From: Auanema rhodensis
Lineage: Eukaryota > Animalia > Nematoda
Length of the DNA: 64,000 bases
Assembly (NCBI GenBank): GCA_964057225.1
Contig: OZ059900.1
Location: 6,820,001 to 6,884,000 of the forward strand
Direction of reading: 5' to 3'
The notes under the pieces are model-generated. The model saw only the letters and a program-made list of their open reading frames with translations. It did not search any database and had not been told where the DNA came from. Shown piece by piece: positions 27,001 to 57,200 of the stretch. How positions within the stretch are numbered: the first letter of the stretch is position 1; each line of letters begins with the position of its first letter. A program made the translations under genes and the position numbers.

Positions 27001-29777
27001 AGAGTGGAGTATGTTTGACGATGATGTCCTATCAATTGCCTCAGTACCCGATGCTCCCATCTCCAACTATGAAGATAAAGATGTTTAAATTCCTGTTAGA
27101 AGCTTTGATAGTGCATTTATGCAACTATTTATTCGGCAGGAAGCAAACAATATACGGTAAAAATTTAAATTTTAATCGTTTATTTTTCATTAGGACCTTA
27201 CTATTCCAATTGACTGATATGGAAAATCCACAACATACCCGTTTTCGTTTCGAACAAGAAAGTTCGGAAGACAACTAGCATGAAAAAAGAGATGTGGAAG
27301 TTAATTAGTACATGGAACTTTATTATAAGAATAGTATTCCTTTTGGGAGCTCAGTTACGGCAATGGCAGATAACCTCAAATGGAGATAGATCTGGACTTC
27401 TTTCGAAACTCATTTTCTATTCGTTAACAATTTTTTTAGTTATTATTTTGAAGAGTGGAGTATGTTTGACGATGATGTCCTATCAATTGCCTCAGTACCC
27501 GATGCTCCCATCTCCAACTATGAAGATAAAGATGTTTAAATTCCTGTTAGAAGCTTTGATAGTGCATTTATGCAACTATTTATTCGGCAGGAAGCAAACA
27601 ATATACGGTAAAAATTTAAATTTTAATCGTTTATTTTTCATTAGGACCTTACTATTCTAATTGACTGATATGGAATATCCACAACATACCCGTTTTCGTT
27701 TCGAACAAGAAAGTTCGGAAGACAACTAGCATGAAAAAAGAGATGTGGAAGTTAATTAGTACATGGAACTTTATTATAAGAATAGTATTCCTTTTGGGAG
27801 CTCAGTTACGGCAATGGCAGATAACCTCAAATGGAGATAGATCTGGACTTCTTTCGAAACTCATTTTCTATTCGTTAACAATTTTTTTAGTTATTATTTT
27901 GAAGAGTGGAGTATGTTTGACGATGATGTCCTATCAATTGCCTCAGTACCCGATGCTCCCATCTCCAACTATGAAGATAAAGATGTTTAAATTCCTGTTA
28001 GAAGCTTTGATAGTGCATTTATGCAACTATTTATTCGGCAGGAAGCAAACAATATACGGTAAAAATTTAAATTTTAATCGTTTATTTTTCATTAGGACCT
28101 TACTATTCTAATTGACTGATATGGAAAATCCACAACATACCCGTTTTCGTTTCGAACAAGAAAGTTCGGAAGACAACTAGCATGAAAAAAGAGATGTGGA
28201 AGTTAATTAGTACATGGAAGTTTATTATAAGAATAGTATTCCTTTTGGGAGCTCAGTTACGGTAATGGCAGATAACCTCAAATGGAGATAGATCTGGACT
28301 TCTTTCGAAACTCATTTTCTATTCGTTAACAATTTTTTTAGTTATTATTTTGAAGAGTGGAGTATGTTTGACCATGATGTCCTATCAATTGCCTCAGTAC
28401 CCGATGCTCCCATCTCCAACTATGAAGATAAAGATGTTTAAATTCCTGTTAGAAGCTTTGATAGTGCATTTATGCAACTATTTATTCGGCAGGAAGCAAA
28501 CAATATACGGTAAAAATTTAAATTTTAATCGTTTATTTTTTATTAGGACCTTACTATTCTAATTGACTGATATGGAAAATCCACAACATACCCGTTTTCG
28601 TTTCGAACAAGAAAGTTCGGAAGACAACTAGCATGAAAAAAGAGATGTGGAAGTTAATTAGTACATGGAAGTTTATTATAAGAATAGTATTCCTTTTGGG
28701 AGCTCAGTTACGGTAATGGCAGATAACCTCAAATGGAGATAGATCTGGACTTCTTTCGAAACTCATTTTCTATTCGTTAACAATTTTTTTAGTTATTATT
28801 TTGAAGAGTGGAATATGTTTGACGATGATGTCCTATCAATTGCCTCAGTACCCGATGCTCCCATCTCCAACTATGAAGATAAAGATGTTTAAATTTCTGT
28901 TAGAAGCTTTGATAGTCCATTTATGCAACTATTTATTCGGCAGGAAGCAAACAATATACGGTAAAAATTTAAATTTTAATCGTTTATTTTTCATTAGGAC
29001 CTTACTATTCTAATTGACTGATATGGAAAATCCACAACATACCCGTTTTCGTTTCGAACAAGAAAGTTCGGAAGACAACTAGCATGAAAAAAGAGATGTG
29101 GAAGTTAATTAGTACATGGAAGTTTATTATAAGAATAGTATTCCTTTTGGGAGCTCAGTTACGGTAATGGCAGATAACCTCAAATGGAGATAGATCTGGA
29201 CTTCTTTCGAAACTCATTTTCTATTCGTTAACAATTTTTTTAGTTATTATTTTGAAGAGTGGAGTATGTTTGACCATGATGTCCTATCAATTGCCTCAGT
29301 ACCCGATGCTCCCATCTCCAACTATGAAGATAAAGATGTTTAAATTCCTGTTAGAAGCTTTGATAGTGCATTTATGCAACTATTTATTCGGCAGGAAGCA
29401 AACAATATACGGTAAAAATTTAAATTTTAATCGTTTATTTTTCATTAGGACCTTACTATTCTAATTGACTGATATGGAAAATCCACAACATACCCGTTTT
29501 CGTTTCGAACAAGAAAGTTCGGAAGACAACTAGCATGAAAAAAGAGATGTGGAAGTTAATTAGTACATGGAACTTTATTATAAGAATAGTATTCCTTTTG
29601 GGAGCTCAGTTACGGTAATGGCAGATAACCTCAAATGGAGATAGATCTGGACTTCTTTCGAAACTCATTTTCTATTCGTTAACAATTTTTTTAGTTATTA
29701 TTTTGAAGAGTGGAGTATGTTTGACGATGATGTCCTATCAATTGCCTCAGTACCCGATGCTCCCATCTTTAACTATG
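1..29777 (+). repeat. 451-bp tandem satellite array, ~66 copies, open at the left window edge
   Basis: Near-identical ORF starts recur at 388+451n out to 29252 (64 x 451), so there are no net indels. Only scattered substitutions between copies. The last partial copy diverges at ~29768-29777 (cccatctttaactatgg). Confidence 0.99.
396..708 (+). pseudogene. USP7: USP7/MATH-33-like deubiquitinase gene fragment inside each 451-bp unit (first full copy shown): 2 exons + 37-nt intron
   Basis: Exon 396-547, intron 548-584 (gtaaaa...ttcattag), exon 585-708 translate to WSMFDDDVLSIASVPDAPISNYEDKDV*IPVRSFDSAFMQLFIRQEANNIR/TLLF*LTDMENPQHTRFRFEQESSEDN*HEKRDVEVN*YMEV. This is colinear with the USP7 catalytic-domain end as recalled (WCKFDDDVVSR...NYGG...NAYMLVYIR...VTDHDIPQQL..RLQEE...EAHLYMQV). 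Four in-frame stops. Confidence 0.8.
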
Positions 29778-29864
29778 GAGACACTGCTCAAGGTTCACAA
29801 AGGTATGATAACATATCATATGATAATTTAAAATGGAGGAAGAAGTTTCAAAAATTGTGTATGT

Positions 29865-30401
29865 GAGAAAGGAAAAAAAACTAAAATAAGCAACAAATTG
29901 GAAGAACTAAACAAACGCTAAAACAAGAATAAAGAAAAAAAATTCAAAAAATTCTATGAAAGAGAAAAACGAAAATTGAAAAAAGTTAAAAAGGGAAAGA
30001 AAAAAAGGTAAAAAAAAAAAAAAAAGGCCAAAAAAAGAATTAAACGAAAAAAACTTTTCAAAAGGTTATGAAAATATAAAAAAAAACAAAAAAAAACGGA
30101 AAAAAAGGCTTAAAAAAAAGAGTTGAACAAAAAAAATAAGAAAAAGGGTTTAAAAAGTAAAAAAACTGAAAAAAAGGCTTAAAAAAAAGAATTGAACAAA
30201 AAAAATCTTAAAAAAGGTTATGAAAAAGAGGAACTGAAAAAAAGGCTTTAAAAAAATTGAACAAAAAAATCGTAAAAAAGTTATAAAAAAGAAAAAAAAG
30301 GTTACAGAACAAATTGAACGAAAAGAATTTGAAAAAAGTTAACAAAAGGGTAAAAAAAAAAAGAAAAAAAAATATCAAGAATGTAGTTTTGAAAAAAAAA
30401 A
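29865..30401 (+). repeat. A-rich low-complexity tract between the two satellites
   Basis: Runs of A interrupted by gg/ggtt/gaac; loose internal repeats such as aaaaaaggcttaaaaaaaa and ttgaacaaaaaaa. Confidence 0.9.
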
Positions 30402-30580
30402 GCCCTCTGCCAGCACAACTTTGCGCCAACTTGTATATTTCTCTACGGAAATAGAGAACAACAGATTATGGAATATCATGCTAAGAAGGAAGATCAGTTG
30501 AATCACCTTAGAGGATGGGGCTTTTACCACTCACTATATCAATCAGATTCCATAAAGTAAATGTCAACAACAAATGATAC

Positions 30581-33500
30581 ATATTCCTCAGGCAGAAAAT
30601 GGTATACGGTATAAATTGAAATTTTGGTTAATTTTTTTTTCACAGGGACAGCAGTATTCCAATTTACTGAAAAACTCCTGATAGAAGCTTCACCAGTGCA
30701 TATATGCTTGTATATTCCTCAGGCAGAAAATGGTATACGGTATAAATTGAAATTTTGATTAATTTTTTTTTCACAGGGACAGCAGTATTCCAATTTACTG
30801 AAAAACTCCTGATAGAAGCTTCACCAGTGCATATATGCTTGTATATTCCTCAGGCAGAAAATGGTATACGGTATAAATTAAAATTTTGATTAATTTTTTT
30901 TTCACAGGGACAGCAGTATTCCAATTTACTGAAAAACTCCTGATAGAAGCTTCACCAGTGCATATATGCTTGTATATTCCTCAGGCAGAAAATGGTATAC
31001 GGTATAAATTGAAATTTTGATTAATTTTTTTTTCACAGGGACAGCAGTATTCCAATTTACTGAAAAACTCCTGATCGAGGCTTCACCAGTGCATATATGC
31101 CTGTATATTCCTCAGGCAGAAAATGGTATACGGTATAAATTGAAATTTTGATTAATTTTTTTTTCACAGGGACAGCAGTATTGCAATTTATTGATATGGA
31201 TAATCCACAACATTAGGAGCATCTTCCTTCTCACGATTCTCATTTTCAATTGGTTAACATTTTCTTTTTTGTATTTATTTTCAACAGTGGGGCAAGTTTG
31301 ACGATGAGCTTCACTACGCGTTGTTATCTTCTCACACTGTCGGAACGAAAATGTCGAAACTCCTGATAGAAGCTTCACCAGTGCATATATGCTTGTATAT
31401 TCCTCAGGCAGAAAATGGTATACGGTATAAATTGAAATTTTGATTAATTTTTTTTTCACAGGGACAGCAGTATTCCAATTTACTGAAAAACTCCTGATAG
31501 AAGCTTCACCAGTGCATATATGCTTGTATATTCCTCAGGCAGAAAATGGTATACGGTATAAATTGAAATTTTGGTTAATTTTTTTTTCACAGGGACAGCA
31601 GTATTGCAATTTATTGATATGGATAATCCACAACATTAGGAGCATCTTCCTTCTCACGATTCTCATTTTCAATTGGTTAACATTTTCTTTTTTGTATTTA
31701 TTTTCAACAGTGGGGCAAGTTTGACGATGAGCTTCACTACGCGTTGTTATCTTCTCACACTGTCGGAACGAAAATGTCGAAACTCCTGATAGAAGCTTCA
31801 CCAGTGCATATATGCTTGTATATTCCTCAGGCAGAAAATGGTATACGGTATAAATTGAAATTTTGATTAATTTTTTTTTCACAGGGACAGCAGTATTCCA
31901 ATTTACTGAAAAACTCCTGATAGAAGCTTCACCAGTGCATATATGCTTGTATATTCCTCAGGCAGAAAATGGTATACGGTATAAATTGAAATTTTGGTTA
32001 ATTTTTTTTTCACAGGGACAGCAGTATTGCAATTTATTGATATGGATAATCCACAACATTAGGAGCATCTTCCTTCTCACGATTCTCATTTTCAATTGGT
32101 TAACATTTTCTTTTTTGTATTTATTTTCAACAGTGGGGCAAGTTTGACGATGAGCTTCACTACGCGTTGTTATCTTCTCACACTGTCGGAACGAAAATGT
32201 CGAAACTCCTGATAGAAGCTTCACCAGTGCATATATGCTTGTATATTCCTCAGGCAGAAAATGGTATACGGTATAAATTGAAATTTTGATTAATTTTTTT
32301 TTCACAGGGACAGCAGTATTCCAATTTACTGAAAAACTCCTGATGGAGGCTTCACCAGTGCATATATGCCTGTATATTCCTCAGGCAGAAAATGGTATAC
32401 GGTATCAATTGAAATTTTGATTAATTTTTGTTTCACAGGGACAGCAGTATTCCAATTTATTGATATGGATAATCCACAACATTAGAAGCATCTTCCTTCT
32501 CACGATTCTCATTTTCAATTGGTTAACATTTTCTTTTTTGTATTTTTTTTCAACAGTGGGGCAAGTTTGACGATGAGCTTCACTACGCGTTGTTATCTTC
32601 TTACACTGTCGGAACGAAAATGTCGAAACTCCTGATAGAAGCTTCACCAGTGCATATATGCCTGTATATTCCTCAGGCAGAAAATGGTATACGGTATAAA
32701 TTAAAACTTTGAATAATTTTTTTTTCACAGGCACAGCAGTATTGCAATTTATTGATATGGATAATCCACAACATTAGGAGCATCTTCCTTCTCACGATTC
32801 TCATTTTCAATTGGTCAACATTTTCTTTTTTGTATTTATTTTCAACAGTGGGGCAAGTTTGACGATGAGCTTCACTACGCGTTGTTATCTTCTCACACTG
32901 TCGGAACGAAAATGTCGAAACTCCTGATAGAAGCTTCACCAGTGCATATATGCTTGTATATTCCTCAGGCAGAAAATGGTATACGGTATAAATTGAAATT
33001 TTGATTAATTTTTTTTTCACAGGGACAGCAGTATTCCAATTTACTGAAAAACTCCTGATAGAAGCTTCACCAGTGCATATATGCTTGTATATTCCTCAGG
33101 CAGAAAATGGTATACGGTATAAATTGAAATTTTGGTTAATTTTTTTTTCACAGGGACAGCAGTATTGCAATTTATTGATATGGATAATCCACAACATTAG
33201 GAGCATCTTCCTTCTCACGATTCTCATTTTCAATTGGTTAACATTTTCTTTTTTGTATTTATTTTCAACAGTGGGGCAAGTTTGACGATGAGCTTCACTA
33301 CGCGTTGTTATCTTCTCACACTGTCGGAACGAAAATGTCGAAACTCCTGATAGAAGCTTCACCAGTGCATATATGCTTGTATATTCCTCAGGCAGAAAAT
33401 GGTATACGGTATAAATTGAAATTTTGATTAATTTTTTTTTCACAGGGACAGCAGTATTCCAATTTACTGAAAAACTCCTGATAGAAGCTTCACCAGTGCA

Positions 33501-36500
33501 TATATGCTTGTATATTCCTCAGGCAGAAAATGGTATACGGTATAAATTGAAATTTTGGTTAATTTTTTTTTCACAGGGACAGCAGTATTGCAATTTATTG
33601 ATATGGATAATCCACAACATTAGGAGCATCTTCCTTCTCACGATTCTCATTTTCAATTGGTTAACATTTTCTTTTTTGTATTTATTTTCAACAGTGGGGC
33701 AAGTTTGACGATGAGCTTCACTACGCGTTGTTATCTTCTCACACTGTCGGAACTAAATGTCGAAACTCCTGATAGAAGCTTCACCAGTGCATATATGCTT
33801 GTATATTCCTCAGGCAGAAAATGGTATACGGTATAAATTGAAATTTTGATTAATTTTTTTTTCACAGGGACAGCAGTATTCCAATTTACTGAAAAACTCC
33901 TGATGGAGGCTTCACCAGTGCATATATGCCTGTATATTCCTCAGGCAGAAAATGGTATACGGTATCAATTGAAATTTTGATTAATTTTTGTTTCACAGGG
34001 ACAGCAGTATTCCAATTTATTGATATGGATAATCCACAACATTAGAAGCATCTTCCTTCTCACGATTCTCATTTTCAATTGGTTAACATTTTCTTTTTTG
34101 TATTTTTTTTCAACAGTGGGGCAAGTTTGACGATGAGCTTCACTACGCGTTGTTATCTTCTTACACTGTCGGAACGAAAATGTCGAAACTCCTGATAGAA
34201 GCTTCACCAGTGCATATATGCCTGTATATTCCTCAGGCAGAAAATGGTATACGGTATAAATTAAAACTTTGAATAATTTTTTTTTCACAGGGACAGCAGT
34301 ATTGCAATTTATTGATATGGATAATCCACAACATTAGGAGCATCTTCCTTCTCACGATTCTCATTTTCAATTGGTTAACATTTTCTTTTTTGTATTTATT
34401 TTCAACAGTGGGGCAACTTTGACGATGAGCTTCACTACGCGTTGTTATCTTCTCACACTGTCGGAACGAAAATGTCGAAACTCCTGATAGAAGCTTCACC
34501 AGTGCATATATGCTTGTATATTCCTCAGGCAGAAAATGGTATACGGTATAAATTGAAATTTTGATTAATTTTTTTTTCACAGGGACAGCAGTATTCCAAT
34601 TTACTGAAAAACTCCTGATGGAGGCTTCACCAGTGCATATATGCCTGTATATTCCTCAGGCAGAAAATGGTATACGGTATAAATTGAAATTTTGATTAAT
34701 TTTTTTTTCACAGGGACAGCAGTATTGCAATTTATTGATATGGATAATCCACAACATTAGGAGCATCTTCCTTCTCACGATTCTCATTTTCAATTGGTTA
34801 ATATTTTCTTTTTTGTATTTATTTTCAACAGTGGGGCAAGTTTGACGATGAGCTTCACTACGCGTTGTTATCTTCTCACACTGTCGGAACGAAAATGTCG
34901 AAACTGCTGATAGAAGCTTCACCAGTGCATATATGCCTGTATATTCCTCAGGCAGAAAATGGTATACGGTATAAATTGAAATTTTGATTAATTTTTTTTT
35001 CACAGGGACAGCAGTATTGCAATTTATTGATATGGATAATCCACAACATTAGGAGCATCTTCCTTCTCACGATTCTCATTTTCAATTGGTTAATATTTTC
35101 TTTTTTGTATTTATTTTCAACAGTGGGGCAAGTTTGACGATGAGCTTCACTACGCGTTGTTATCTTCTCACACTGTCGGAACGAAAATGTCGAAACTCCT
35201 GATAGAAGCTTCACCAGTGCATATATGCTTGTATATTCCTCAGGCAGAAAATGGTATACGGTATCAATTGAAATTTTGATTAATTTTTGTTTCACAGGGA
35301 CAGCAGTATTCCAATTTACTGAAAAACTCCTGATGGAGGCTTCACCAGTGCATATATGCCTGTATATTCCTCAGGCAGAAAATGGTATACGGTATAAATT
35401 GAAATTTTGATTAATTTTTTTTTCACAGGGACAGCAGTATTCCAATTTACTGAAAAACTCCTGATGGAGGCTTCACCAGTGCATATATGCCTGTATATTC
35501 CTCAGGCAGAAAATGGTATACGGTATCAATTGAAATTTTGATTAATTTTTGTTTCACAGGGACAGCAGTATTCCAATTTACTGAAAAACTCCTGATGGAG
35601 GCTTCACCAGTGCATATATGCCTGTATATTCCTCAGGCAGAAAATGGTATACGGTATAAATTGAAATTTTGATTAATTTTTTTTTCACAGGGACAGCAGT
35701 ATTCCAATTTACTGAAAAACTCCTGATGGAGGCTTCACCAGTGCATATATGCCTGTATATTCCTCAGGCAGAAAATGGTATACGGTATCAATTGAAATTT
35801 TGATTAATTTTTGTTTCACAGGGACAGCAGTATTCCAATTTACTGAAAAACTCCTGATGGAGGCTTCACCAGTGCATATATGCCTGTATATTCCTCAGGC
35901 AGAAAATGGTATACGGTACAAATTAAAACTTTGAATAATTTTTTTTTCACAGGGACAGCAGTATTCCAATTTACTGAAAAACTCCTGATGGAGGCTTCAC
36001 CAGTGCATATATGCTTGTATATTCCTCAGGCAGAAAATGGTATACGGTATAAATTGAAACTTTGAATAATTTTTTTTTCACAGGGACAGCAGTATTCCAA
36101 TTTACTGAAAAACTCCTGATGGAGGCTTCACCAGTGCATATATGCCTGTATATTCCTCAGGCAGAAAATGGTATACGGTATAAATTGAAATTTTGATTAA
36201 CTTTTTTTTCACAGGAACAGCAGTATTCCAATTTACTGAAAAACTCCTGATGGAGGCTTCACCAGTGCATATATGCCTGTATATTCCTCAGGCAGAAAAT
36301 GGTATACGGTATCAATTGAAATTTTGATTAATTTTTGTTTCACAGGGACAGCAGTATTCCAATTTACTGAAAAACTCCTGATGGAGGCTTCACCAGTGCA
36401 TATATGCCTGTATATTCCTCAGGCAGAAAATGGTATACGGTATAAATTGAAATTTTGATTAATTTTTTTTTCACAGGGACAGCAGTATTGCAATTTATTG

Positions 36501-39500
36501 ATATGGATAATTCACAACATTAGGAGCATCTTCCTTCTCACGATTCTTATTTTCAATTGGTTAACATTTTTTTTTGTTTTTATTTTCAACAGTGGGGCAA
36601 GTTTGACGATGAGCTTCACTACGCGTTGTTATCTTCTCACACTGTCGGAACGAAAATGTCGAAACTCCTGATAGAAGCTTCACCAGTGCATATATGCCTG
36701 TATATTCCTCAGGCAGAAAATGGTATACGGTATAAATTGAAATTTTGATTAATTTTTTTTTCACAGGGACAGCAGTATTCCAATTTACTGAAAAACTCCT
36801 GATGGAGGCTTCACCAGTGCATATATGCCTGTATATTCCTCAGGCAGAAAATGGTATACGGTATAAATTGAAATTTTGATTAATTTTTTTTTCACAGGGA
36901 CAGCAGTATTCCAATTTACTGAAAAACTCCTGATGGAGGCTTCACCAGTGCATATATGCCTGTATATTCCTCAGGCAGAAAATGGTATACGGTATAAATT
37001 GAAATTTTGATTAATTTTTTTTTCACAGGGACAGCAGTATTCCAATTTACTGAAAAACTCCTGATGGAGGCTTCACCAGTGCATATATGCCTGTATATTC
37101 CTCAGGCAGAAAATGGTATACGGTATAAATTGAATATTTGATTAATTTTTTTTTCACAGGGACAGCAGTATTCCAATTTACTGAAAAACTCCTGATGGAG
37201 GCTTCACCAGTGCATATATGCCTGTATATTCCTCAGGCAGAAAATGGTATACGGTATAAATTGAAATTTTGATTAATTTTTTTTTCACAGGGACAGCAGT
37301 ATTGCAATTTATTGATATGGATAATCCACAACATTAGGAGCATCTTCCTTCTCACGATTCTCATTTTCAATTGGTTAACATTTTTTTTTTGTATTTATTT
37401 TCAACAGTGGGGCAAGTTTGACGATGAGCTTCACTACGCGTTGTTATCTTCTCACACTGTCGGAACGAAAATGTCGAAACTCCTGATAGAAGCTTCACCA
37501 GTGCATATATGCCTGTATATTCCTCAGGCAGAAAATGGTATACGGTATAAATTGAAATTTTGATTAATTTTTTTTCACAGGGACAGCAGTATTCCAATTT
37601 ACTGAAAAACTCCTGATGGAGGCTTCACCAGTGCATATATGCCTGTATATTCCTCAGGCAGAAAATGGTATACGGTATAAATTGAAATTTTGATTAATTT
37701 TTTTATACAGGGACAGCAGTATTCCAATTTACTGAAAAACTCCTGATGGAGGCTTCACCAGTGCATATATGCCTGTATATTCCTCAGGCAGAAAATGGTA
37801 TACGGTATAAATTGAAATTTTGATTAATTTTTTTTTCACAGGGACAGCAGTATTGCAATTTATTGATATGGATAATCCACAACATTAGGAGCATCTTCCT
37901 TCTCACGATTCTCATTTTCAATTGGTTAACATTTTTTTTTTTGTATTTATTTTCAACAGTGGGGCAAGTTTGACGATGAGCTTCACTACGCGTTGTTATC
38001 TTCTCACACTGTCGGAACGAAAATGTCGAAACTCCTGATAGAAGCTTCACCAGTGCATATATGCCTGTATATTCCTCAGGCAGAAAATGGTATACGGTAT
38101 AAATTGAAATTTTGATTAATTTTTTTTTCACAGGGACAGCAGTATTGCAATTTATTGATATGGATAATCCACAACATTAGGAGCATCTTCCTTCTCACGA
38201 TTCTCATTTTCAATTGGTTAACATTTTTTTTTTTGTATTTATTTTCAACAGTGGGGCAAGTTTGACGATGAGCTTCACTACGCGTTGTTATCTTCTCACA
38301 CTGTCGGAACGAAAATGTCGAAACTCCTGATAGAAGCTTCACCAGTGCATATATGCCTGTATATTCCTCAGGCAGAAAATGGTATACGGTAAAAATTGAA
38401 ATTTTGATTAATTTTTTTTTCACAGGGACAGCAGTATTCCAATTTACTGAAAAACTCCTGATGGAGGCTTCACCAGTGCATATATGCCTGTATATTCCTC
38501 AGGCAGAAAATGGTATACGGTATAAATTGAAATTTTGATTAATTTTTTTATACAGGGACAGCAGTATTCCAATTTACTGAAAAACTCCTGATGGAGGCTT
38601 CACCAGTGCATATATGCCTGTATATTCCTCAGGCAGAAAATGGTATACGGTATAAATTGAAATTTTGATTAATTTTTTTATACAGGGACAGCAGTATTCC
38701 AATTTACTGAAAAACTCCTGATGGAGGCTTCACCAGTGCATATATGCCTGTATATTCCTCAGGCAGAAAATGGTATACGGTATAAATTGAAATTTTGATT
38801 AATTTTTTTTTCACAGGGACAGCAGTATTGCAATTTATTGATATGGATAATCCACAACATTAGGAGCATCTTCCTTCTCACGATTCTCATTTTCAATTGG
38901 TTAACATTTTTTTTTGTATTTATTTTCAACAGTGGGGCAAGTTTGACGATGAGCTTCACTACGCGTTATTATCTTGTCACACTGTCGGAACGAAAATGTC
39001 GAAACTCCTGATAGAAGCTTCACCAGTGCATATATGCCTGTATATTCCTCAGGCAGAAAATGGTATACGGTATAAATTGAAATTTTGATTAATTTTTTTA
39101 TACAGGGACAGCAGTATTGCAATTTACTGAAAAACTCCTGATGGAGGCTTCACCAGTGCATATATGCCTGTATATTCCTCAGGCAGAAAATGGTATACGG
39201 TATAAATTGAAATTTTGATTAATTTTTTTTTCACAGGGACAGCAGTATTCCAATTTACTGAAAAACTCCTGATGGAGGCTTCACCAGTGCATATATGCCT
39301 GTATATTCCTCAGGCAGAAAATGGTATACGGTATAAATTGAAATTTTGATTAATTTTTTTATACAGGGACAGCAGTATTCCAATTTACTGAAAAACTCCT
39401 GATGGAGGCTTCACCAGTGCATATATGCCTGTATATTCCTCAGGCAGAAAATGGTATACGGTATAAATTGAAATTTTGATTAATTTTTTTTTCACAGGGA

Positions 39501-41100
39501 CAGCAGTATTGCAATTTATTGATATGGATAATCCACAACATTAGGAGCATCTTCCTTCTCACGATTCTCATTTTCAATTGGTTAACATTTTTTTTTTTGT
39601 ATTTATTTTCAACAGTGGGGCAAGTTTGACGATGAGCTTCACTACGCGTTGTTATCTTCTCACACTGTCGGAACGAAAATGTCGAAACTCCTGATAGAAG
39701 CTTCACCAGTGCATATATGCCTGTATATTCCTCAGGCAGAAAATGGTATACGGTAAAAATTGAAATTTTGATTAATTTTTTTTTCACAGGGACAGCAGTA
39801 TTCCAATTTACTGAAAAACTCCTGATGGAGGCTTCACCAGTGCATATATGCCTGTATATTCCTCAGGCAGAAAATGGTATACGGTATAAATTGAAATTTT
39901 GATTAATTTTTTTATACAGGGACAGCAGTATTCCAATTTACTGAAAAACTCCTGATGGAGGCTTCACCAGTGCATATATGCCTGTATATTCCTCAGGCAG
40001 AAAATGGTATACGGTATAAATTGAAATTTTGATTAATTTTTTTATACAGGGACAGCAGTATTCCAATTTACTGAAAAACTCCTGATGGAGGCTTCACCAG
40101 TGCATATATGCCTGTATATTCCTCAGGCAGAAAATGGTATACGGTATAAATTGAAATTTTGATTAATTTTTTTTTCACAGGGACAGCAGTATTGCAATTT
40201 ATTGATATGGATAATCCACAACATTAGGAGCATCTTCCTTCTCACGATTCTCATTTTCAATTGGTTAACATTTTCTTTTTTGTATTTATTTTCAACAGTG
40301 GGGCAAGTTTGACGATGAGCTTCACTACGCGTTGTTATCTTCTCACACTGTCGGAACGAAAATGTCGAAACTCCTGATAGAAGCTTCACCAGTGCATATA
40401 TGCCTGTATATTCCTCAGGCAGAAAATGGTATACGGTATAAATTGAAATTTTGATTAATTTTTTTTCACAGGGACAGCAGTATTCCAATTTACTGAAAAA
40501 CTCCTGATGGAGGCTTCACTAGTGCATATATGCCTGTATATTCCTCAGGCAGAAAATGGTATACGGTATAAATTGAAATTTTGATTAATTTTTTTTTCAC
40601 AGGGACAGCAGTATTCCAATTTACTGAAAAACTCCTGATGGAGGCTTAACCAGTGCATATATGCCTGTATATTCCTCAGGCAGAAAATGGTATACGGTAT
40701 AAATTGAAATTTTAATTAATTTTTTTTTCCTAGGGACAGCAGTATTCCAATTTACTGAAAAACTCCTGATGGAGGCTTCAACAGTGCATATATGCCTGTA
40801 TATTCCTCAGGCAGAAAATGGTATACGGTATAAATTGAAATTTTAATTAATTTTTTTCCTAGGGACAGCAGTATTCCAATTTACTGAAAAACTCCTGATG
40901 GAAGCTTCACCAGTGCATATATGCCTGTATATTCCTCAGGCAGAAAATGGTATACGGTATAAATTGAAATTTTAATTAATTTTTTTTTCCTAGGGACAGC
41001 AGTATTCCAATTCATTGATACGGATATTCCACAAGATTAGGAGCATCTTCCTTCTTACGATTCTCACTTTCAACTTGTTAACATTTTCTTTGTTGTGTTT
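30581..41100 (+). repeat. Composite tandem array of 131-bp (S) and 292-bp (L = S + 161 bp) units
   Basis: The anchor attcctcaggcagaaaatggtatacgg recurs at 131- or ~292-bp spacing; S+L gives a 423-bp period at 31112/31535/31958. Terminal copy (~41000-41100) is degenerate. Confidence 0.98.
31288..31490 (+). pseudogene. USP7: Second, diverged USP7-like fragment forming the 131/292-bp units (one example shown)
   Basis: Acceptor ttttcaacag|TGG at 31288, then WGKFDD, a 13-bp deletion relative to the 451 unit, ASLRVVIFSHCRNENVETPDRSFTSAYMLVY, a 2-bp deletion, PQAENGIR, and a 37-nt intron 31425-31461 (gtataa...ttcacag). Continues TAVFQFT (S units) or TAVLQFIDMDNPQH (L units). SAYMLVY is the canonical USP C-terminal motif. 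Confidence 0.8.
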
Positions 41101-41119
41101 TGTTCATTCATTTGTCTAG

Positions 41120-44100
41120 GAGTGGAGGAGGAGAAAGGTTAGAAAAGGGTGAAAAAGAAGGTAAAAAAATGTAGAAAAAGAAGGGAAAAATTGGTAGAAA
41201 AAAAGGTGAAAAAAGGTAAAAAAAGGTTAAAAAAGAAGGGAAAAATTGGTAGAAAAAAAGGGAAAAATTGGTAGAAAAAAAGGGAAAAGGTTAAAAAAGA
41301 AGGGAAAAATTGGTAGAAAAAAAGGTGAAAAAAGGGAAAAATTAGTAGGAAAAAAGGGAAAAAGGTAAAAAAGGTGAAAAAAGGGAAAATGGTAGAAAAA
41401 GAAGGGAAAAATTGGTAGAAAAAAAGGGAAAAAGGTAAAAAAAGGGAAAATCGTTGAAAAAGAAGGGAAAAATTGGTAGAAAAAAAAGGTGAAAAAAGGG
41501 AAAAATTAGTAGGAAAAAAGGTGAAAAAAGGTTAAAAAAGAAGGGAAAAATTGGTAGAAAAAAATGTGAAAAAAGGGAAAAATTGGTAGAAAAAAAGGGA
41601 AAAGGTAAAAAAAGGTTAAAAAAAAGGGAAAAGGTAAAAAAAGGTTAAAAAAAGGGAAAAATTGGTAGAAAAAAAAGGAAAAATTGGTAGAAAAAAAGGG
41701 AAAAGGTAAAAAAAGGTAGAAAAGGAAGGGAAAAATTGGTAGAAAAAAAGGGAAAAATTGGTAGAAAAAAAGGGAAAAGGTTAAAAAAAAGGGGAAAATT
41801 GGTAGAAAAAAAGGGAAAAAGGTAAAAAAAGGTTAAAAAAGAAGGGAAAAATTGGTAGAAAAAAAGGGAAAAATTGGTAGAAAAAAAGGGAAAAGGTAAA
41901 AAAAGGTTAAAAAAAGGTAGAAAAGGAAGGGAAAAATTGGTAGAAAAAAAGGGAAAAATTGGTAGAAAAAAAGGGAAAAGGTAAAAAAAGGTAGAAAAGG
42001 AAGGGAAAAATTGGTAGAAAAAAAGGGAAAAATTGGTAGAAAAAAAGGGAAAAGGTTAAAAAAAAGGGAAAAATTGGTAGAAAAAAAGGGAAAAAGGTAA
42101 AAAAAGGTTAAAAAAGAAGGGAAAAATTGGTATAAAAAAAAGGGAAAAATTGGTAGAAAAAAAGGGAAAAGGTAAAAAAAGGTTAAAAAAAAGGGAAAAG
42201 GTAAAAAAAGGTTAAAAAAAAAGGGAAAAATTGGTAGAAAAAAAGGGAAAAATTGGTAGAAAAAAAGGGAAAAGGTAAAAAAAGGTAGAAAAGGAAGGGA
42301 AAAATTGGTAGAAAAAAAGGGAAAAATTGGTAGAAAAAAAGGGAAAAGGTAAAAAAAGGTTAAAAAAAGGTAGAAAAAAAGGGAAAAATTGGTAGAAAAA
42401 AAGGGAAAAGGTAAAAAAAGGTTAAAAAAAAAAGGAAAAATTGGTAGAAAAAAAGGGAAAAAGGTAAAAAAAGGTAGAAAAGGAAGGGAAAAATTGGTAG
42501 AAAAAAAGGGAAAAATTGGTAGAAAAAAAGGGAAAAGGTAAAAAAAGGTAGAAAAGGAAGGGAAAAATTGGTAGAAAAAAAGGGAAAAATTGGTAGAAAA
42601 AAAGGGAAAAGGTTAAAAAAAAGGGGAAAATTGGTAGAAAAAAAGGGAAAAAGGTAAAAAAAGGTTAAAAAAAAAAGGAAAAATTGGTAGAAAAAAAGGG
42701 AAAAAGGTAAAAAAAGGTAGAAAAGGAAGGGAAAAATTGGTAGAAAAAAAGGGAAAAATTGGTAGAAAAAAAGGGAAAAGGTTAAAAAAAAGGGGAAAAT
42801 TGGTAGAAAAAAAGGGAAAAAGGTAAAAAAAGGTTAAAAAAGAAGGGAAAAATTGGTAGAAAAAAAGGGAAAAGGTTAAAAAAAAAGGGAAAAATTGGTA
42901 GAAAAAAAGGGAAAAATTGGTAGAAAAAAAGGGAAAAGGTTAAAAAAAAAGGGAAAAATTGGTAGAAAAAAAGGGAAAAGGTTAAAAAAAAAGGGAAAAA
43001 TTGGTAGAAAAAAAGGGAAAAGGTAAAAAAAGGTTAAAAAAGAAGGGAAGAATTGGTATAAAAAAAAGGGAAAAATTGGTAGAAAAAAAGGGAAAAGGTA
43101 AAAAAAGGTTAAAAAAAAAGGGAAAAATTGGTAGAAAAAAAGGGAAAAATTGGTAAAAAAAAGGGAAAAGGTAAAAAAAGGTTAAAAAAAGGTAGAAAAA
43201 AAGGGAAAAATTGGTAGAAAAAAAGGGAAAAGGTAAAAAAAGGTTAAAAAAAGGTAGAAAAAAAGGGAAAAATTGGTAGAAAAAAAGGGAAAAATTGGTA
43301 GAAAAAAAGGGAAAAGGTAAAAAAAGGTAGAAAAGGAAGGGAAAAATTGGTAGAAAAAAAGGGAAAAATTGGTAGAAAAAAAGGGAAAAGGTTAAAAAAA
43401 AAGGGAAAAATTGGTAGAAAAAAAGGAAAAAAGGTAAAAAAAGGTTAAAAAAGAAGGGAAAAATTGGTAGAAAAAAAGGGAAAAATTGGTAGAAAAAAAG
43501 GGAAAAATTGGTAGAAAAAAAGGGAAAAGGTAAAAAAAGGTTAAAAAAAAAGGGAAAAATTGGTAGAAAAAAGGGAAAAATTGGTAGAAAAAAAGGGAAA
43601 AGGTAAAAAAAGATTAAAAAAGAAGGAAAAAATTGGTAGAAAAAAAGGGAAAAATTGGTAGAAAAAAAGGGAAAAGGTAAAAAAAGGTAGAAAAGGAAGG
43701 GAAAAATTGGTAGAAAAAAAGGGAAAAATTGGTAGAAAAAAAGGGAAAAGGTAAAAAAAGGTTAAAAAAAGGTAGAAAAAAAGGGAAAAATTGGTAGAAA
43801 AAAAGGGAAAAGGTAAAAAAAGGTTAAAAAAAAAAGGAAAAATTGGTAGAAAAAAAGGGAAAAAGGTAAAAAAAGGTAGAAAAGGAAGGGAAAAATTGGT
43901 AGAAAAAAAGGGAAAAATTGGTAGAAAAAAGGGAAAAATTGGTAGAAAAAAAGGGAAAAGGTAAAAAAAGATTAAAAAAGAAGGAAAAAATTGGTAGAAA
44001 AAAAGGGAAAAATTGGTAGAAAAAAAGGGAAAAGGTAAAAAAAGGTAGAAAAGGAAGGGAAAAATTGGTAGAAAAAAAGGGAAAAATTGGTAGAAAAAAA

Positions 44101-47100
44101 GGGAAAAGGTAAAAAAAGGTTAAAAAAAGGTAGAAAAAAAGGGAAAAATTGGTAGAAAAAAAGGGAAAAGGTAAAAAAAGGTTAAAAAAAAAAGGAAAAA
44201 TTGGTAGAAAAAAAGGGAAAAAGGTAAAAAAAGGTAGAAAAGGAAGGGAAAAATTGGTAGAAAAAAAGGGAAAAATTGGTAGAAAAAAAGGGAAAAGGTA
44301 AAAAAAGGTAGAAAAGGAAGGGAAAAATTGGTAGAAAAAAAGGGAAAAATTGGTAGAAAAAAAGGGAAAAATTGGTAGAAAAAAAGGGAAAAGGTTAAAA
44401 AAAAAGGGAAAAATTGGTAGAAAAAAAGGGAAAAAGGTAAAAAAAGGTAGAAAAGGAAGGGAAAAATTGGTAGAAAAAAAGGGAAAAATTGGTAGAAAAA
44501 AAGGGAAAAGGTAAAAAAAGGTAGAAAAGGAAGGGAAAAATTGGTAGAAAAAAAGGGAAAAATTGGTAGAAAAAAAGGGAAAAGGTAAAAAAAGGTTAAA
44601 AAAAAAAGGAAAAATTGGTAGAAAAAAAGGGAAAAAGGTAAAAAAAGGTAGAAAAGGAAGGGAAAAATTGGTAGAAAAAAAGGGAAAAATTGGTAGAAAA
44701 AAAGGGAAAAGGTAAAAAAAGGTTAAAAAAAAAGGGAAAAATTGGTATAAAAAAAAGGGAAAAATTGGTAGAAAAAAAGGGAAAAAGGTAAAAAAAGGTT
44801 AAAAAAGAAGGGAAAAATTGGTATAAAAAAAAGGGAAAAATTGGTAGAAAAAAAGGGAAAAGGTAAAAAAAGGTTAAAAAAAAAGGGAAAAGGTAAAAAA
44901 AGGTTAAAAAAAAGGGAAAAATTGGTAGAAAAAAAGGGAAAAGGTAAAAAAAGGTTAAAAAAGAAGGGAAAAATTGGTATAAAAAAAAGGGAAAAATTGG
45001 TAGAAAAAAAGGGAAAAGGTAAAAAAAGGTTAAAAAAAAAAGGAAAAATTGGTAGAAAAAAAGGGAAAAGGTAAAAAAAGATTAAAAAAGAAGGAAAAAA
45101 TTGGTAGAAAAAAAGGTGAAAAAGGTAAAAAAAGGGAAAATAGTAGAAAAAGAAGGGAAAAATTTGTAGGAAAAAAGGTGAAAAAAGGTAAAAAAGGTTA
45201 AAAAAGAAGGGAAAAATTGGTAGAAAAAAAGGGAAAAATTGGTAAAAAAAAAGGGAAAAGGTAAAAAAAGGTTAAAAAAAAAGGGAAAAGGTAAAAAAAG
45301 GTTAAAAAAAAAGGGAAAAATTGGTAGAAAAAAAGGGAAAAGGTAAAAAAAGGTAGAAAAGGAAGGGAAAAATTGGTAGAAAAAAAGGGAAAAATTGGTA
45401 GAAAAAAAGGGAAAAGGTTAAAAAAAAAGGGAAAAATTGGTAGAAAAAAAGGAAAAAAGGTAAAAAAAGGTTAAAAAAGAAGGGAAAAATTGGTAGAAAA
45501 AAAGGGAAAAATTGGTAGAAAAAAAGGGAAAAGGTAAAAAAAGGTTAAAAAAAAAGGGAAAAATTGGTAGAAAAAAGGGAAAAATTGGTAGAAAAAAAGG
45601 GAAAAGGTAAAAAAAGATTAAAAAAGAAGGAAAAAATTGGTAGAAAAAAAGGGAAAAATTGGTAGAAAAAAAGGGAAAAGGTAAAAAAAGGTTAAAAAAA
45701 AAAGGAAAAATTGGTAGAAAAAAAGGGAAAAGGTAAAAAAAGGTTAAAAAAAAAAGGAAAAATTGGTAGAAAAAAAGGGAAAAGGTAAAAAAAGATTAAA
45801 AAAGAAGGAAAAAATTGGTAGAAAAAAAGGTGAAAAAGGTAAAAAAAGGGAAAATAGTAGAAAAAGAAGGGAAAAATTGGTAGAAAAAAAGGTGAAAAAG
45901 GTAAAAAAAGGGAAAATAGTAGAAAAAGAAGGGAAAAATTGGTAGAAAAAAAGGGAAAAGGTTAAAAAAAAGGGGAAAATTGGTAGAAAAAAAGGGAAAA
46001 ATTGGTAGAAAAAAAGGGAAAAGGTAAAAAAAGGTTAAAAAAAAAGGGAAAAATTGGTAGAAAAAAGGGAAAAATTGGTAGAAAAAAAGGGAAAAGGTAA
46101 AAAAAGATTAAAAAAGAAGGAAAAAATTGGTAGAAAAAAAGGGAAAAATTGGTAGAAAAAAAGGGAAAAGGTAAAAAAAGGTTAAAAAAAAAAGGAAAAA
46201 TTGGTAGAAAAAAAGGGAAAAGGTAAAAAAAGGTTAAAAAAAAAAGGAAAAATTGGTAGAAAAAAAGGGAAAAGGTAAAAAAAGATTAAAAAAGAAGGAA
46301 AAAATTGGTAGAAAAAAAGGTGAAAAAGGTAAAAAAAGGGAAAATAGTAGAAAAAGAAGGGAAAAATTGGTAGAAAAAAAGGTGAAAAAGGTAAAAAAAG
46401 GGAAAATAGTAGAAAAAGAAGGGAAAAATTGGTAGAAAAAATAGGTGAAAAAAGGGAAAAATTTGTAGGAAAAAAGGTGAAAAAAGGTAAAAAAGGTTAA
46501 AAAAGAAGGGAAAAATTGGTAGAAAAAAAGGTTAAAAAAGGGAGAAAAAGAATGAAATAATTGGTAGAAAAAAAGGTGAAAAAAGGGAAAAATTGGTCGA
46601 AAAAAAGAAAAAAATTGGTAAAAAAAGGTGAAGAAGGTAAATAAGGTAGAAGAAGAATTGAAAAATTGGACTTTGGAAAAAATGAAAAATGAGGTAAAAT
46701 ATGGATAGGAAAAATAGAAAAAAGGTGAAAAAAGGGAAAAAAGGGAGACGAGGAAAAAATGGTAGAAAAAAGATAAAAAGGTAAAAAAAGGTAGAAAAGG
46801 AAGGGAAAAATTGGTAGAAAAAAGGTAAAAAGGTAAAAAAAAATTAGAAAAAGAATAGAAAAAGTGGACTTTAGAAAAAAATGAAAAATGAGGGAAATTA
46901 TGGATATGAAAAATAGAAAAAAAGGTAAAAAAAGGGAAAAAAGGAGAAAAGATTAGAAAAGGGAGAAAAAAAAGGCAAAAATTGATAGAAAAAAAGGTAA
47001 AAAAAGAGAAAAAGGTAAAAAAAGGTAGAAGAAGAATTGAAAAATTGGACTTTGGAAAAAATGAAAAATGAGGGAAAATATGGATAAGAAAAATAGAAAA

Positions 47101-47159
47101 GAGGTAAAAAAGGAAAAAGGGGAAAAAAGGAAAAAGGTAGAAAAAGAAGAAAAAGAACA
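41120..47159 (+). repeat. ~6-kb purine-rich (A/G) degenerate minisatellite, core ~22 bp gggaaaaattggtagaaaaaaa
   Basis: Shuffled modules aattggtag, gggaaaaggt, aaaggtt, ggaaggg separated by A runs. No C seen on the + strand until ~46600. A 490-bp internal duplication is shown by identical ORFs at 45763 and 46253. Confidence 0.97.
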
Positions 47160-51399: not shown

Positions 51400-53086
51400 G
51401 AATTTTGGAAAAATCAATACTAATTCTAAAATCTAAAAAACGTTTGGATGGATTTGGCTTGTAAAAAACGATATCTTTTGATGTTTATAACCGTATAAAA
51501 CTTGTTCCACGCTGTTTTTTGGAATTATCTTTCTTTGTGTGAATAGCTAATGAATATATCTAGTCCAATGCAAAAGTTCATAACGATATCTCTGTTGGTA
51601 CAAAAGTTATAACTTTCTAAAAATAAGACAAACAGCTAAAACTTTGACTTTAAACGGCTTTATCTTCTTAACCATTGAGTTTTTTCAAAATTTTTTAATA
51701 GATCCGAGCTCTACTCATAAAGATCTTTTGAATGAGTTGTTGATCTAAAGGTTTAGAGCACTTTGAAATTTTAAGAAATAAAGAATTTGACCAATTTAGA
51801 ATTGAAAAAATAAAAATTTCAAGTTTTTTAACATTTAAGTATTGTATTTGAATAAACTAAACACGCTGATTTCAAATTTGAAAACCGAATTTCTCATTTC
51901 TCACGCTGAAAGGAGTTGTGATACTTTGAAATTTTTGGCGTTAATCATTCAGAAGGCTATAACTTCGTTAAAATGGAATTTCAGAGACTCCCACTTAGTT
52001 TAATCGTCTTCTCTGTCTTTCATTCATTTTGAATGTTGTTTTCACAACTTTTCTACAAAATTTTTATTTTTTGTTAAAATTGTTCAATTTCATGTACTCC
52101 CCCCTTACCTACTTTTTGATCATAACAATCGATATCATTGGAATTCTCAAAACATTTTCTAATTTCTTCGTTAATTATGTGGTATAATCAAAATTTGATA
52201 ATGCTTAGATGAGTATGTCATTGGAATTCTCAAAATATTCTCTAATGTACCTGTTAACTATGTGTTGTATGATATATCTAAGCATTATTGAGTCTTGATT
52301 ATACCACATAGTTAACGAAGAAATTAGAAAATGTTTTGAGAATTCCAATGATATCGATTGTTATGACCGAAAAGTAGGTAAGGGGGGAGTACATGAAATT
52401 GAACAATTTTAACAAAAAATAAAAATTTTGTAGAAAAGTTGTGAAAACAACATTCAAAATGAATGAAAGACAGAGAAGACGATTAAACTAAGTGGGAGTC
52501 TCTGAAATTCCATTTTAACGAAGTTATAGCCTTCTGAATGATTAACGCCAAAAATTTCAAAGTATCACAACTCCTTTCAGCGTGAGAAATGAGAAATTCG
52601 GTTTTCAAATTTGAAATCAGCGTGTTTAGTTTATTCAAATACAATACTTAAATGTTAAAAAACTTGAAATTTTTATTTTTTCAATTCTAAATTGGTCAAA
52701 TTCTTTATTTCTTAAAATTTCAAAGTGCTCTAAACCTTTAGATCAACAACTCATTCAAAAGATCTTTATGAGTAGAGCTCGGATCTATTAAAAAATTTTG
52801 AAAAAACTCAATGGTTAAGAAGATAAAGCCGTTTAAAGTCAAAGTTTTAGCTGTTTGTCTTATTTTTAGAAAGTTATAACTTTTGTACCAACAGAGATAT
52901 CGTTATGAACTTTTGCATTGGACTAGATATATTCATTAGCTATTCACACAAAGAAAGATAATTCCAAAAAACAGCGTGGAACAAGTTTTATACGGTTATA
53001 AACATCAAAAGATATCGTTTTTTACAAGCCAAATCCATCCAAACGTTTTTTAGATTTTAGAATTAGTATTGATTTTTCCAAAATTC

Positions 53087-54285: not shown

Positions 54286-57200
54286 TCACAAAACGTATCG
54301 CATTGCGGTAAATGTATCTGAGGGATTCCAGTTTTGAGGTATATATATTAAGTGTTCCAAACGAGAATACTCTATGGTTGTACGTACCTGAAATATTTTG
54401 TATAACGTTGAAAGATTCAAAAAAAACATACTGGTTTATAGACATCAAAAGTTGTGCTTTCAGTAGCGGTGAAATTGACCACTACATCGCCGATCCTGAT
54501 AAGCTGACTGATTGGGATCTCTACTGGTTGAACAAATGGTCTCTGTTCTCCAGATGTTGATACTTCACCTATATTAGGTTGTTCTCCATTTTGAAACACA
54601 ACATTTTCAGGAATATTAATGAAAAATGCTTCTATTTCTCGCAGATTTTCTCTCCTTCTTTCTCGTTCCAAACGATCCGTAAATCTGTTTACAAAATCGA
54701 AGCGTCCTTGATTTGTAGATAATGGAGCAAAGCATCTGAGAAGATACTCATGGTTTGGCAATCTCATTTCGACCAAGTATCTTGGATAAGTACGTGGAAT
54801 GAAAGCTACTTCTTGAACACGTGGCCTTTGGCCAAGAGCGTGGGAACGGTGAAATCTTGATATATTCAGTAAGCGGATAAATTCGCTATCAGAACGAGGA
54901 ATATAATACAGTATTGGTAGAGAGTGGATTCTAGTTCCACACAAACTTGAAAAATGAATGATAGGGTCTGGTCTACCTCGACCAGGCCCCAAAATGTTGC
55001 ATTTAAGTACAGGATGAACTATGTGGCAGCGTATACGATATCCTCTGAACATTGGATTTGTGGTGTCTCTCAAGGCAATATTTTTCAATCGATCTATAAA
55101 AGGTTTCATGTTCAAGTTGTAACCTCTGATTCGGATGCCATATTCGTTTGCAGAAATGTAGCTAGTATCATGTCCAATATAAATTCCTTGAATGTCAGGA
55201 TGAAGAGGATCATTATCAATTCTCAAAAAAAATTTGTTGTCCTCACTTCCTTTTTTTGTGCTTTCGATGCTCATTATAATGCCATTAAATTGAGGAACGG
55301 CATTTTCAATGTCTGGCATGACACGCGTATATCGAACAGCAGGCATTTGTTCAGGAATTGCCGCCGATTTAACAACTAGTCCACCTCCTCCCATTCTTAA
55401 GAGGTACAAGAATGCGTTACCATCTGTATCATTAGTTACAGAGCTTATGAGCTCAATTAGCTTGTTATGCTTATCGTGAACACATCCTATGCGTGGAAAT
55501 GCGTTGCAAGGTCGGTTAGATTCTTCTTTAGTAGAGCATGGGCTATAAGCAAGACTATTTCCAACGATTTTGGTTTCGCTCTCCCAGTGATGCAAACGAT
55601 TTGGCCGAGTTGTGTTTGGTCTAGGAGGACTTCTTGCCTGTCGACGAACTATAGTGCGAATAGGATATTTTGAATCAATTTTGCTATTGCACAGTATCAC
55701 AGATGGTTCGCCGGTGGGCTCAGGACTTGCGAATACTTTGCGTTGTCCTACAGGATGGGACACTCGGTTAAAATGAACTCGAATTCCGACACCGGTGCTG
55801 TTAGCGCCATCAGAAATATCTATTGCAGGTCCTTCGAAAAGTTCAGTTTTCAGTTGAAAAAAAGGTAAAGATGTTCTGATACTGCTGCAAGGTCGTTTTG
55901 GTGGTATCATATCATCAAATTCTCCAAAGTTATAATTAGTATTAGAAGTAGATGCTTTTCCTCTAGAACTCGGAGCAGTTGGTGTAGTTGGGGCATTTGG
56001 TCCAGTTGGCGTAGTAGGTGCCGTTGGTTTGCTCGGAGTTGTAGGTACAGGTGGCTGCGTTAAAACTGCTGTGCTCGCCGTATTTATATATTTTTTTTGT
56101 TTTTCATATCTTATGATTCGTGGATTTTTGATCATAACGACAGAATTAGAAGGGCTTGCTCGACGAACGTTTTTTCTACCGTTGGAGTTGTTAGTTCTTC
56201 CTAAAGTGTTGAACGAATTACATAGTACTCGTGCTGTTCCTATTTCTTCAAAGTGATTGACAATGAATCTTCGTCCGTAATTACTCCGGTTGAAATCATA
56301 ATTTCTGTAGAAAGCATATCTGCTCTTTTTCATTTGAGCAATGAAGTCAGTTTCTTCAACAATGTCCCTTGACGCATTAATACGGTTGTTGTCCTTCGTA
56401 TAAAATCTTATGTACGGGCGGCAGTAGTCATGCTCCGGTAACATTCTGCTGATGATCAAATGTTCAGCACTGCTTTCACTTGTAGTGCTAAAGCTGCTGC
56501 TATTATTTTCATAACGATTTTCTTCTTTATTCGTACTGCAACTGGAACGTTTTTTAATCTTCCTCTCCTGTTCATTCTCAGAATTGAAGTTACTGTCAGA
56601 AGAAGTCTCATTTTTTGTAACTCTGTTGAAAACAACTTTGTAGACTTCGGGATCAATAATGGCATCTGTTGAAATCTGACTATCATTATCAATAGCACGC
56701 TCAAGATCAGTTTCGTTTTCAATATCACTATCATCCTCGTCAGATTTACTTCCATTTTCTTCTATTTCAGTATCATTTGAATTATGAGTATTACATTCAT
56801 TTATTCCTCCATGTAAGTCACGCGATAGGTTGCTGCATTCACCAGAATCCCTGTCCTTTACTGGATTCTCAAACTGATTGGACTCCTCATGAACAATTGG
56901 ATTGTGACATTTCACAATGTTCAATTTTCCACCGTACATGCTGAGGTTTTTTGTATTCTGTTCATCAAGAAACTTGGATAACTTATGAGGTACTTCAATT
57001 AACAGTTGTGGAGACCAATAAACTGGCTCATCAAGAAGAGCATATGTCAGACGATTGAAAATGAATTGCATAGTAACTGGCACTCCATTGGATTTGATTT
57101 CTTCTTTTGCAATATATGGAAGATGTATTTGAAGTAAATTGTATTTGCAATACTCATCCGGAATGAACGTGCAAATTAATTCTTTGTGACCAGGCACTGT

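Follow-up and report, generated by a model that had tools for sequence, protein, structure and literature searches.

We analysed a 64,000-nt stretch of the genome of the nematode Auanema rhodensis (contig OZ059900.1, positions 6,820,001 to 6,884,000; hereafter the window), in which two adjacent tandem arrays of the same orientation carry broken fragments of the deubiquitinase gene USP7. Tandem arrays were delimited with Tandem Repeats Finder (TRF). The first is a 451-bp satellite at positions 1-29781 (+ strand; 66 copies at 99% in TRF), and the second, which is our main subject and which we call array 2, extends from 30581 to 41126 (+), with a TRF call of a 131/292/423-bp repeat over 30581-41012. 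Three segments separate them: the right flank of the 451-bp array (29782-29838, +), which is a diverged variant of one exon of the unit (exon A, described below) with extra sequence and whose boundary with the array is spanned by single-copy read contigs; an A-rich low-complexity spacer (29839-30380, +; 64% A, repeats of ∼69 bp); and a unique 200-bp spacer without USP7 homology (30381-30580), from which single-copy contigs of two sequencing runs reach into array 2. We conclude that array 2 is non-coding satellite DNA belonging to the same superfamily as the 451-bp satellite.

The copies of the 451-bp satellite were very uniform, each of the 66 differing from the consensus at 0-4 positions and none containing an indel. 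By homology, the unit is ordered as the rest of exon B, a 30-nt GT..AG linker, the tail of exon Z, a 31-nt intron, exon A, a 37-nt intron, and the start of exon B, with the tandem junction probably located inside the 30-nt linker. The reading frame is kept, in-frame stops are present, and exon A reads W.FDDDV...NY...A.M..IR.E. When exon A was compared to the PDB with an X at the in-frame stop, it returned 26 matches, all of them to human USP7 (E 0.005; 47 residues without gaps), around W.KFDDDV...NYGG...AYMLVYIRE. Single stop-free pieces of the 451 exon, which are too short, found no USP7 match in the PDB, the X-joined exon gave nothing in Pfam, and no candidates for intact-gene ORFs or other families emerged when this exon was searched against a protein database. 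Judging from sequence, the source fragment would cover the catalytic-domain end of USP7, from the exon Z tail through intron, exon A, and intron to the start of exon B. A functional USP7 paralogue was considered and ruled out, as only ∼50-100 codons of the gene are present and these are interrupted by stops or frameshifts. A 36-nt segment in the right flank of this array (29783-29818) recurs at other places in the genome inside exon-A-like sequence, as an extra ∼44 nt between ..AAAGACGTC.. and ..CTTGTTAGAAG..; these extra nucleotides could represent an insertion variant, or else an intron that the real gene has and all arrays lack.

Parsing of array 2 with the anchor CTCCTGAT yielded 57 units. 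Of these, 38 are short, with lengths of 129-131 bp, and 19 are long, with lengths of 290-292 bp; the latter number includes a diverged long unit at the end of the array. Mean pairwise identity was 97.9% among long units and 96.9% among short ones. A typical long unit (31068-31359, +) consists of the end of exon A, an intron, the start of exon B, a junction reading ..CCACAACAT/TAGGAG.. (the slash marks the breakpoint), the exon Z tail, a 35-nt intron, and the start of exon A. All long units have a 13-nt and a 2-nt deletion in common as well as the TAG at the junction. A short unit, such as that at 35327-35457 (+), is a long unit minus 161 bp, from the middle of exon B to the middle of exon A. 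These units are organized in successive domains on the + strand: 423-bp short-long dimers, several of them 100% identical (31068-35195), then nine consecutive short units (35196-36374), then a domain composed mostly of long-short-short-short blocks of 681-684 bp that are 98.1-99.7% alike (36375-40891), and last the terminal long unit (40892-41126), in which the 292-type junction is present. Within the dimer domain, a block of 1561 bp is duplicated at 99.7%; array 2 enlarges through block duplication. Unspliced ORFs reach 97 aa at most. With head-to-tail, highly identical units, no intact gene, and higher-order blocks, array 2 is satellite DNA.

The 292-bp and 451-bp units are homologous, as the preliminary description of this locus had proposed from three quoted pairs of stretches, all of which we recovered, and the homology extends over the full length of the former. 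After rotation of the 451 consensus, its last ∼300 bp could be aligned with the entire 292 consensus at 77% identity and a Kimura two-parameter (K2P) distance of 0.27, with 215 matching columns, 64 mismatching ones, and 35 that contain gaps. The local alignment score of 162 was far above the 20.6 ± 2.6 obtained in 300 dinucleotide shuffles (z = 54), which disposes of the concern that the likeness might be no better than that of shuffled AT-rich controls. A GT..AG segment of 37 nt is found in both families at homologous positions, and the unit types are nested, 131 inside 292 and 292 inside 451. The 292 unit is missing a segment of ∼160 bp that runs from ..CCACAACAT in exon B to the Z tail; the junction of the 451 unit falls within it, and a look-alike motif, CCTCAAAT, stands at its other end.

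The two families are disabled by different lesions, as described earlier: the 451 unit by in-frame stops, and the 292 unit by its 13-nt and 2-nt deletions, with none of the 451 stops and with GAA at the position of the first of them. Of the 47 human USP7 residues, 17 are kept in the 451 unit, 13 in the 292 unit, and 22 in the union of both, which indicates that each family retains ancestral residues lost from the other and bears out the suggestion that a combined ancestor is more USP7-like than either. The derivation of both families from the same USP7 segment holds in a more indirect form than originally stated. While the 451 unit matches only USP7 in the PDB, the X-joined 292 exon on its own found zero matches there, so the USP7 origin of the 292 unit rests on its DNA homology to the 451 unit. 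Between the families, the two introns were 81% and 82% identical, and the exon parts 74-79%. Conservation of the introns is thus no lower than that of the exons, which means that coding constraint has been absent since the families split and that they diverged neutrally.

A third family, with a 431-bp unit, is known only from read contigs, which correspond to 29276-29755 of the window. These contigs come from runs of three studies (P1, P3, and P4) with three coded organism labels. The 431-bp family is collinear with the 451-bp unit across 256 bp with 15 differences, has lost 48 bp around the first intron (29677-29724), and otherwise differs in length through indels; GAA replaces a 451 stop and NYG replaces NYE. 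Half of ten differences in this family are synonymous (5/10), a bias that is not significant (binomial estimate ∼0.08-0.2). Its copy number by contig depth is roughly 20-60. In a three-way count over 55 securely aligned columns, the 451-bp family had 3 private changes, the 431-bp family 3, and the 292-bp family 10, pointing to a hierarchy in which 451 and 431 form one group and 292, followed by 131, the other.

The same contigs reproduce both families of the window and span the 451/flank and spacer/array-2 boundaries at single-copy depth. Contig depths, a rough measure of copy number, gave ∼53-71 451-bp units and ∼15 long units (estimated on long-unit-specific sequence; 19 assembled) in run X4, and ∼170-280 and ∼28, respectively, in run X8. 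Relative to the single-copy flank, 451 copy number differed ∼three- to four-fold between these two samples (29100-31400). Given such differences in depth ratios, copy number seems to be polymorphic.

The terminal long unit offers a view of the history of array 2. Over 200 reliably aligned columns, 13 differences (6.5%) set it apart from the consensus, and the state of the 451 unit is kept by the terminal unit at 5 of these and by the consensus at 6. Because this unit has the 292 junction and is nonetheless 6.5% diverged, with changes split 5 to 6, we infer that the interior of array 2 has turned over since the junction arose. In addition, two bases common to short units and the 451 unit are altered in the long-unit consensus; since the short units keep these states, the deletion that produced the short form is old and the long units were homogenized afterwards. 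In an unrooted tree, all units of array 2 clustered tightly, short and long ones interleaved, and a long branch separated them from the 451 units.

We favor, with some confidence, an explanation in which the families derive from one ancestral tandem array that was split into domains and remodelled by deletion. A single tandem duplication of a USP7 fragment, downstream of USP7, would have founded a proto-array of ∼450-bp units, which, because unequal exchange acts locally, would have split into neutrally diverging domains. A deletion in one of these, spanning the unit junction and bounded by the look-alikes CCACAACAT and CCTCAAAT, would have produced the 292-bp unit, and a second deletion of 161 bp the 131-bp unit, after which unequal crossing-over would have multiplied mixed blocks of the two. 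The common core would then be what remained after nested deletions, its presence in all families explained by descent alone and requiring no special explanation. We favor a single origin for five reasons: the nesting of the units, the neighbouring position and common orientation of the arrays, the deletion and re-amplification that took place inside array 2, the greater age of the edge unit, and the existence of several related families. Four points weigh on the other side. The 292 junction could equally be the primary tandem-duplication junction of a separate single-copy pseudogene, as either history would leave an identical sequence; the families are far apart (23%), and among the units of the window we saw none of intermediate form; the family tree lacks an intact-USP7 root, so that derived changes common to 451 and 292 are not polarized; and the edge unit dates the 292 junction to before the present homogeneity only, not to the split.

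The strongest competitor is the scenario of the preliminary description, in which two separate partial USP7 pseudogene copies decayed singly and were later each amplified around overlapping segments. We regard it as possible but the less probable account. The tandem junctions, lesions, and unit lengths of the two families all differ, divergence is 23% between families versus 0.4-3% within each (identity of 77% versus 97-99.6%), and 451 and 292 units form separate clusters joined by a long branch. The three-way count also makes the 292 branch ∼three times as long as the 451 branch, as an older separate derivation would give. However, two separate copies would need two independent tandemizations of the same ∼300 bp, adjacent and co-oriented, whereas nested deletion followed by amplification is seen directly inside array 2, and the 292 junction is at least 6.5% old. 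Nor is array 2 flanked by pseudogene remains: searches with both consensus units by blastn and tblastx against the flanks and the 47-64 kb part of the window recovered array edges only, and with no other USP7-like sequence in the flanks of array 2 or the rest of the window, any relic of a seed pseudogene is absent. The two-copy scenario is therefore less parsimonious than a single ancestral array. Of the parallel amplification originally envisaged, the common USP7 segment, the independent neutral decay, and the recent turnover in each array stand, while the amplification of two separate copies is put in doubt by the nested units and the absence of flanking relics. Direct derivation of one array from the other after amplification, which had been named as the outcome that would overturn the original scenario, did not appear in the unrooted tree, where the two arrays were separate clusters instead.

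Some of the contigs suggest that array 2 is expressed. In run X12, for which the RNA label is a guess and only contigs were used, three contigs on array 2 end or start exactly where 44 nt are missing. This gap has three equivalent placements, one of which is GT..AG, with donor AAAATG/GTATACGG and acceptor CACAG/GGAC. The skipped segment lies at 33110-33153 (+), and there is a further skip site at 34539-34582, plus the equivalent place in other array-2 units. Its donor lies 7 nt upstream of that of the 37-nt intron (here 33117-33153) previously said to be common to both families; while the 37-nt GT..AG segment does occur at the homologous place, the contigs skip 44 nt. Depths in X12 were 20-76 for array 2, 32 for the 431-bp family, and only 3 for the 451-bp family. 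This order is opposite to the proportions in DNA, and the single-copy spacer was left largely uncovered. Based on these skips and depths, array-2 units appear to be transcribed from the + strand, in the sense of USP7, and spliced. Once spliced (by a 44-nt or 43-nt skip), a short unit would measure 87 nt with one open frame encoding a 29-residue repeat, giving in-silico ORFs of up to 264 aa in 35196-36374 and other runs of short units. We give the coding reading of these runs no weight, as 42% of shuffled units were also open.

The apparent splicing bears on another explanation, namely that the exon-intron-exon core was kept by selection, as a spliced repeat RNA regulating USP7 or feeding small-RNA pathways, or is mechanistically prone to amplification. 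We consider this improbable. The intron and its flanks are present in every unit type (451, 431, 292, and 131), the intron is removed in three contigs of a probable RNA run with depths unlike DNA proportions, and the spliced short unit has its single open frame. However, descent alone explains the retention of the core, divergence between families was neutral, the open frame is matched in many shuffled units, and the RNA label of X12 is a guess, with contigs as the only data. Units matched no Rfam family at the gathering score, and their folding was not unusually stable (z between -0.6 and -1.1). The earlier suggestion of an amplification-prone or selected core accordingly finds no support here. 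A more specific form of this idea, which we hold to be slightly more doubtful still, is that the arrays are transcribed in USP7 sense, the intron is efficiently spliced, and the core persists because the spliced repeat RNA is useful or protected; such RNA might, for instance, escape or feed small-RNA silencing, or regulate USP7, and in a variant of this form the spliced short-unit runs would encode a protein of 29-residue repeats. As for an assembly artefact, long satellites are difficult to assemble, but the possibility that array 2 is a mis-assembled or collapsed version of the 451-bp array is close to negligible, as contigs from the runs of three studies contain the unit types and cross both boundaries at single-copy depth, and the long-unit depth in X4 (∼15 copies) compares with 19 assembled.

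On its right, array 2 is bounded by a 6-kb minisatellite (41134-47155, +), whose composition on this strand is 62% A, 26% G, 12% T, and 0.1% C. A-rich low-complexity repeats of one strand thus lie on both sides of array 2 (29839-30380 and 41134-47155); they are 65-67% alike, a likeness that composition alone may account for. Beyond the minisatellite, we observed ordinary nematode-looking genes. This region also contains a near-perfect inverted duplication (51842-52187 versus 52299-52644) with the same two ORFs on opposite strands, and an uninterrupted ORF of 1421 aa (54417-58682, - strand) without a Pfam match.

The origins of satellites are rarely readable, and in this locus the series of 451-, 431-, 292-, and 131-bp units retains recognizable USP7 exons and introns. 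The steps from gene fragment to anonymous satellite can therefore be traced through junction deletion, block duplication, and homogenization with older edges. The locus could serve as a teaching case and possibly as a marker for population copy-number work; of its features, only the hint of a spliced satellite RNA might lead further. Our literature searches turned up no account of USP7-derived satellites, and a preprint on telomere-to-telomere (T2T) genomes of C. nigoni and C. briggsae mentions neither tRNA arrays nor USP7.

Among known systems, array 2 resembles higher-order repeats such as primate alpha satellite and fits the 'library' and unequal-crossover models of satellites: adjacent related families are each uniform but differ from one another, blocks of several units have been duplicated, the interior is younger than the edges, and copy number varies. 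It departs from these in that one can still read the monomer's origin in a protein-coding gene, and the context is that of a holocentric nematode, with no reason to assume a centromere role. The Stellate and Su(Ste) repeats of Drosophila are tandem arrays derived from a CK2-beta gene, of which Stellate keeps an ORF and Su(Ste) acts via piRNAs. Array 2 is similar to these in its protein-coding-gene origin, intron sequence included, and in its apparent transcription, but it has no demonstrated coding capacity or small RNAs. The human RS447 megasatellite, with 4.7-kb units that hold whole, intact, intronless USP17 genes, likewise places deubiquitinase gene sequence in a tandem array of variable copy number, whereas the units studied here are broken fragments of 131-451 bp. 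Array 2, which had been put forward as the best candidate for an undescribed system in the window, is thus not a new kind of system or mechanism; it is ordinary satellite-DNA evolution, seen unusually clearly.

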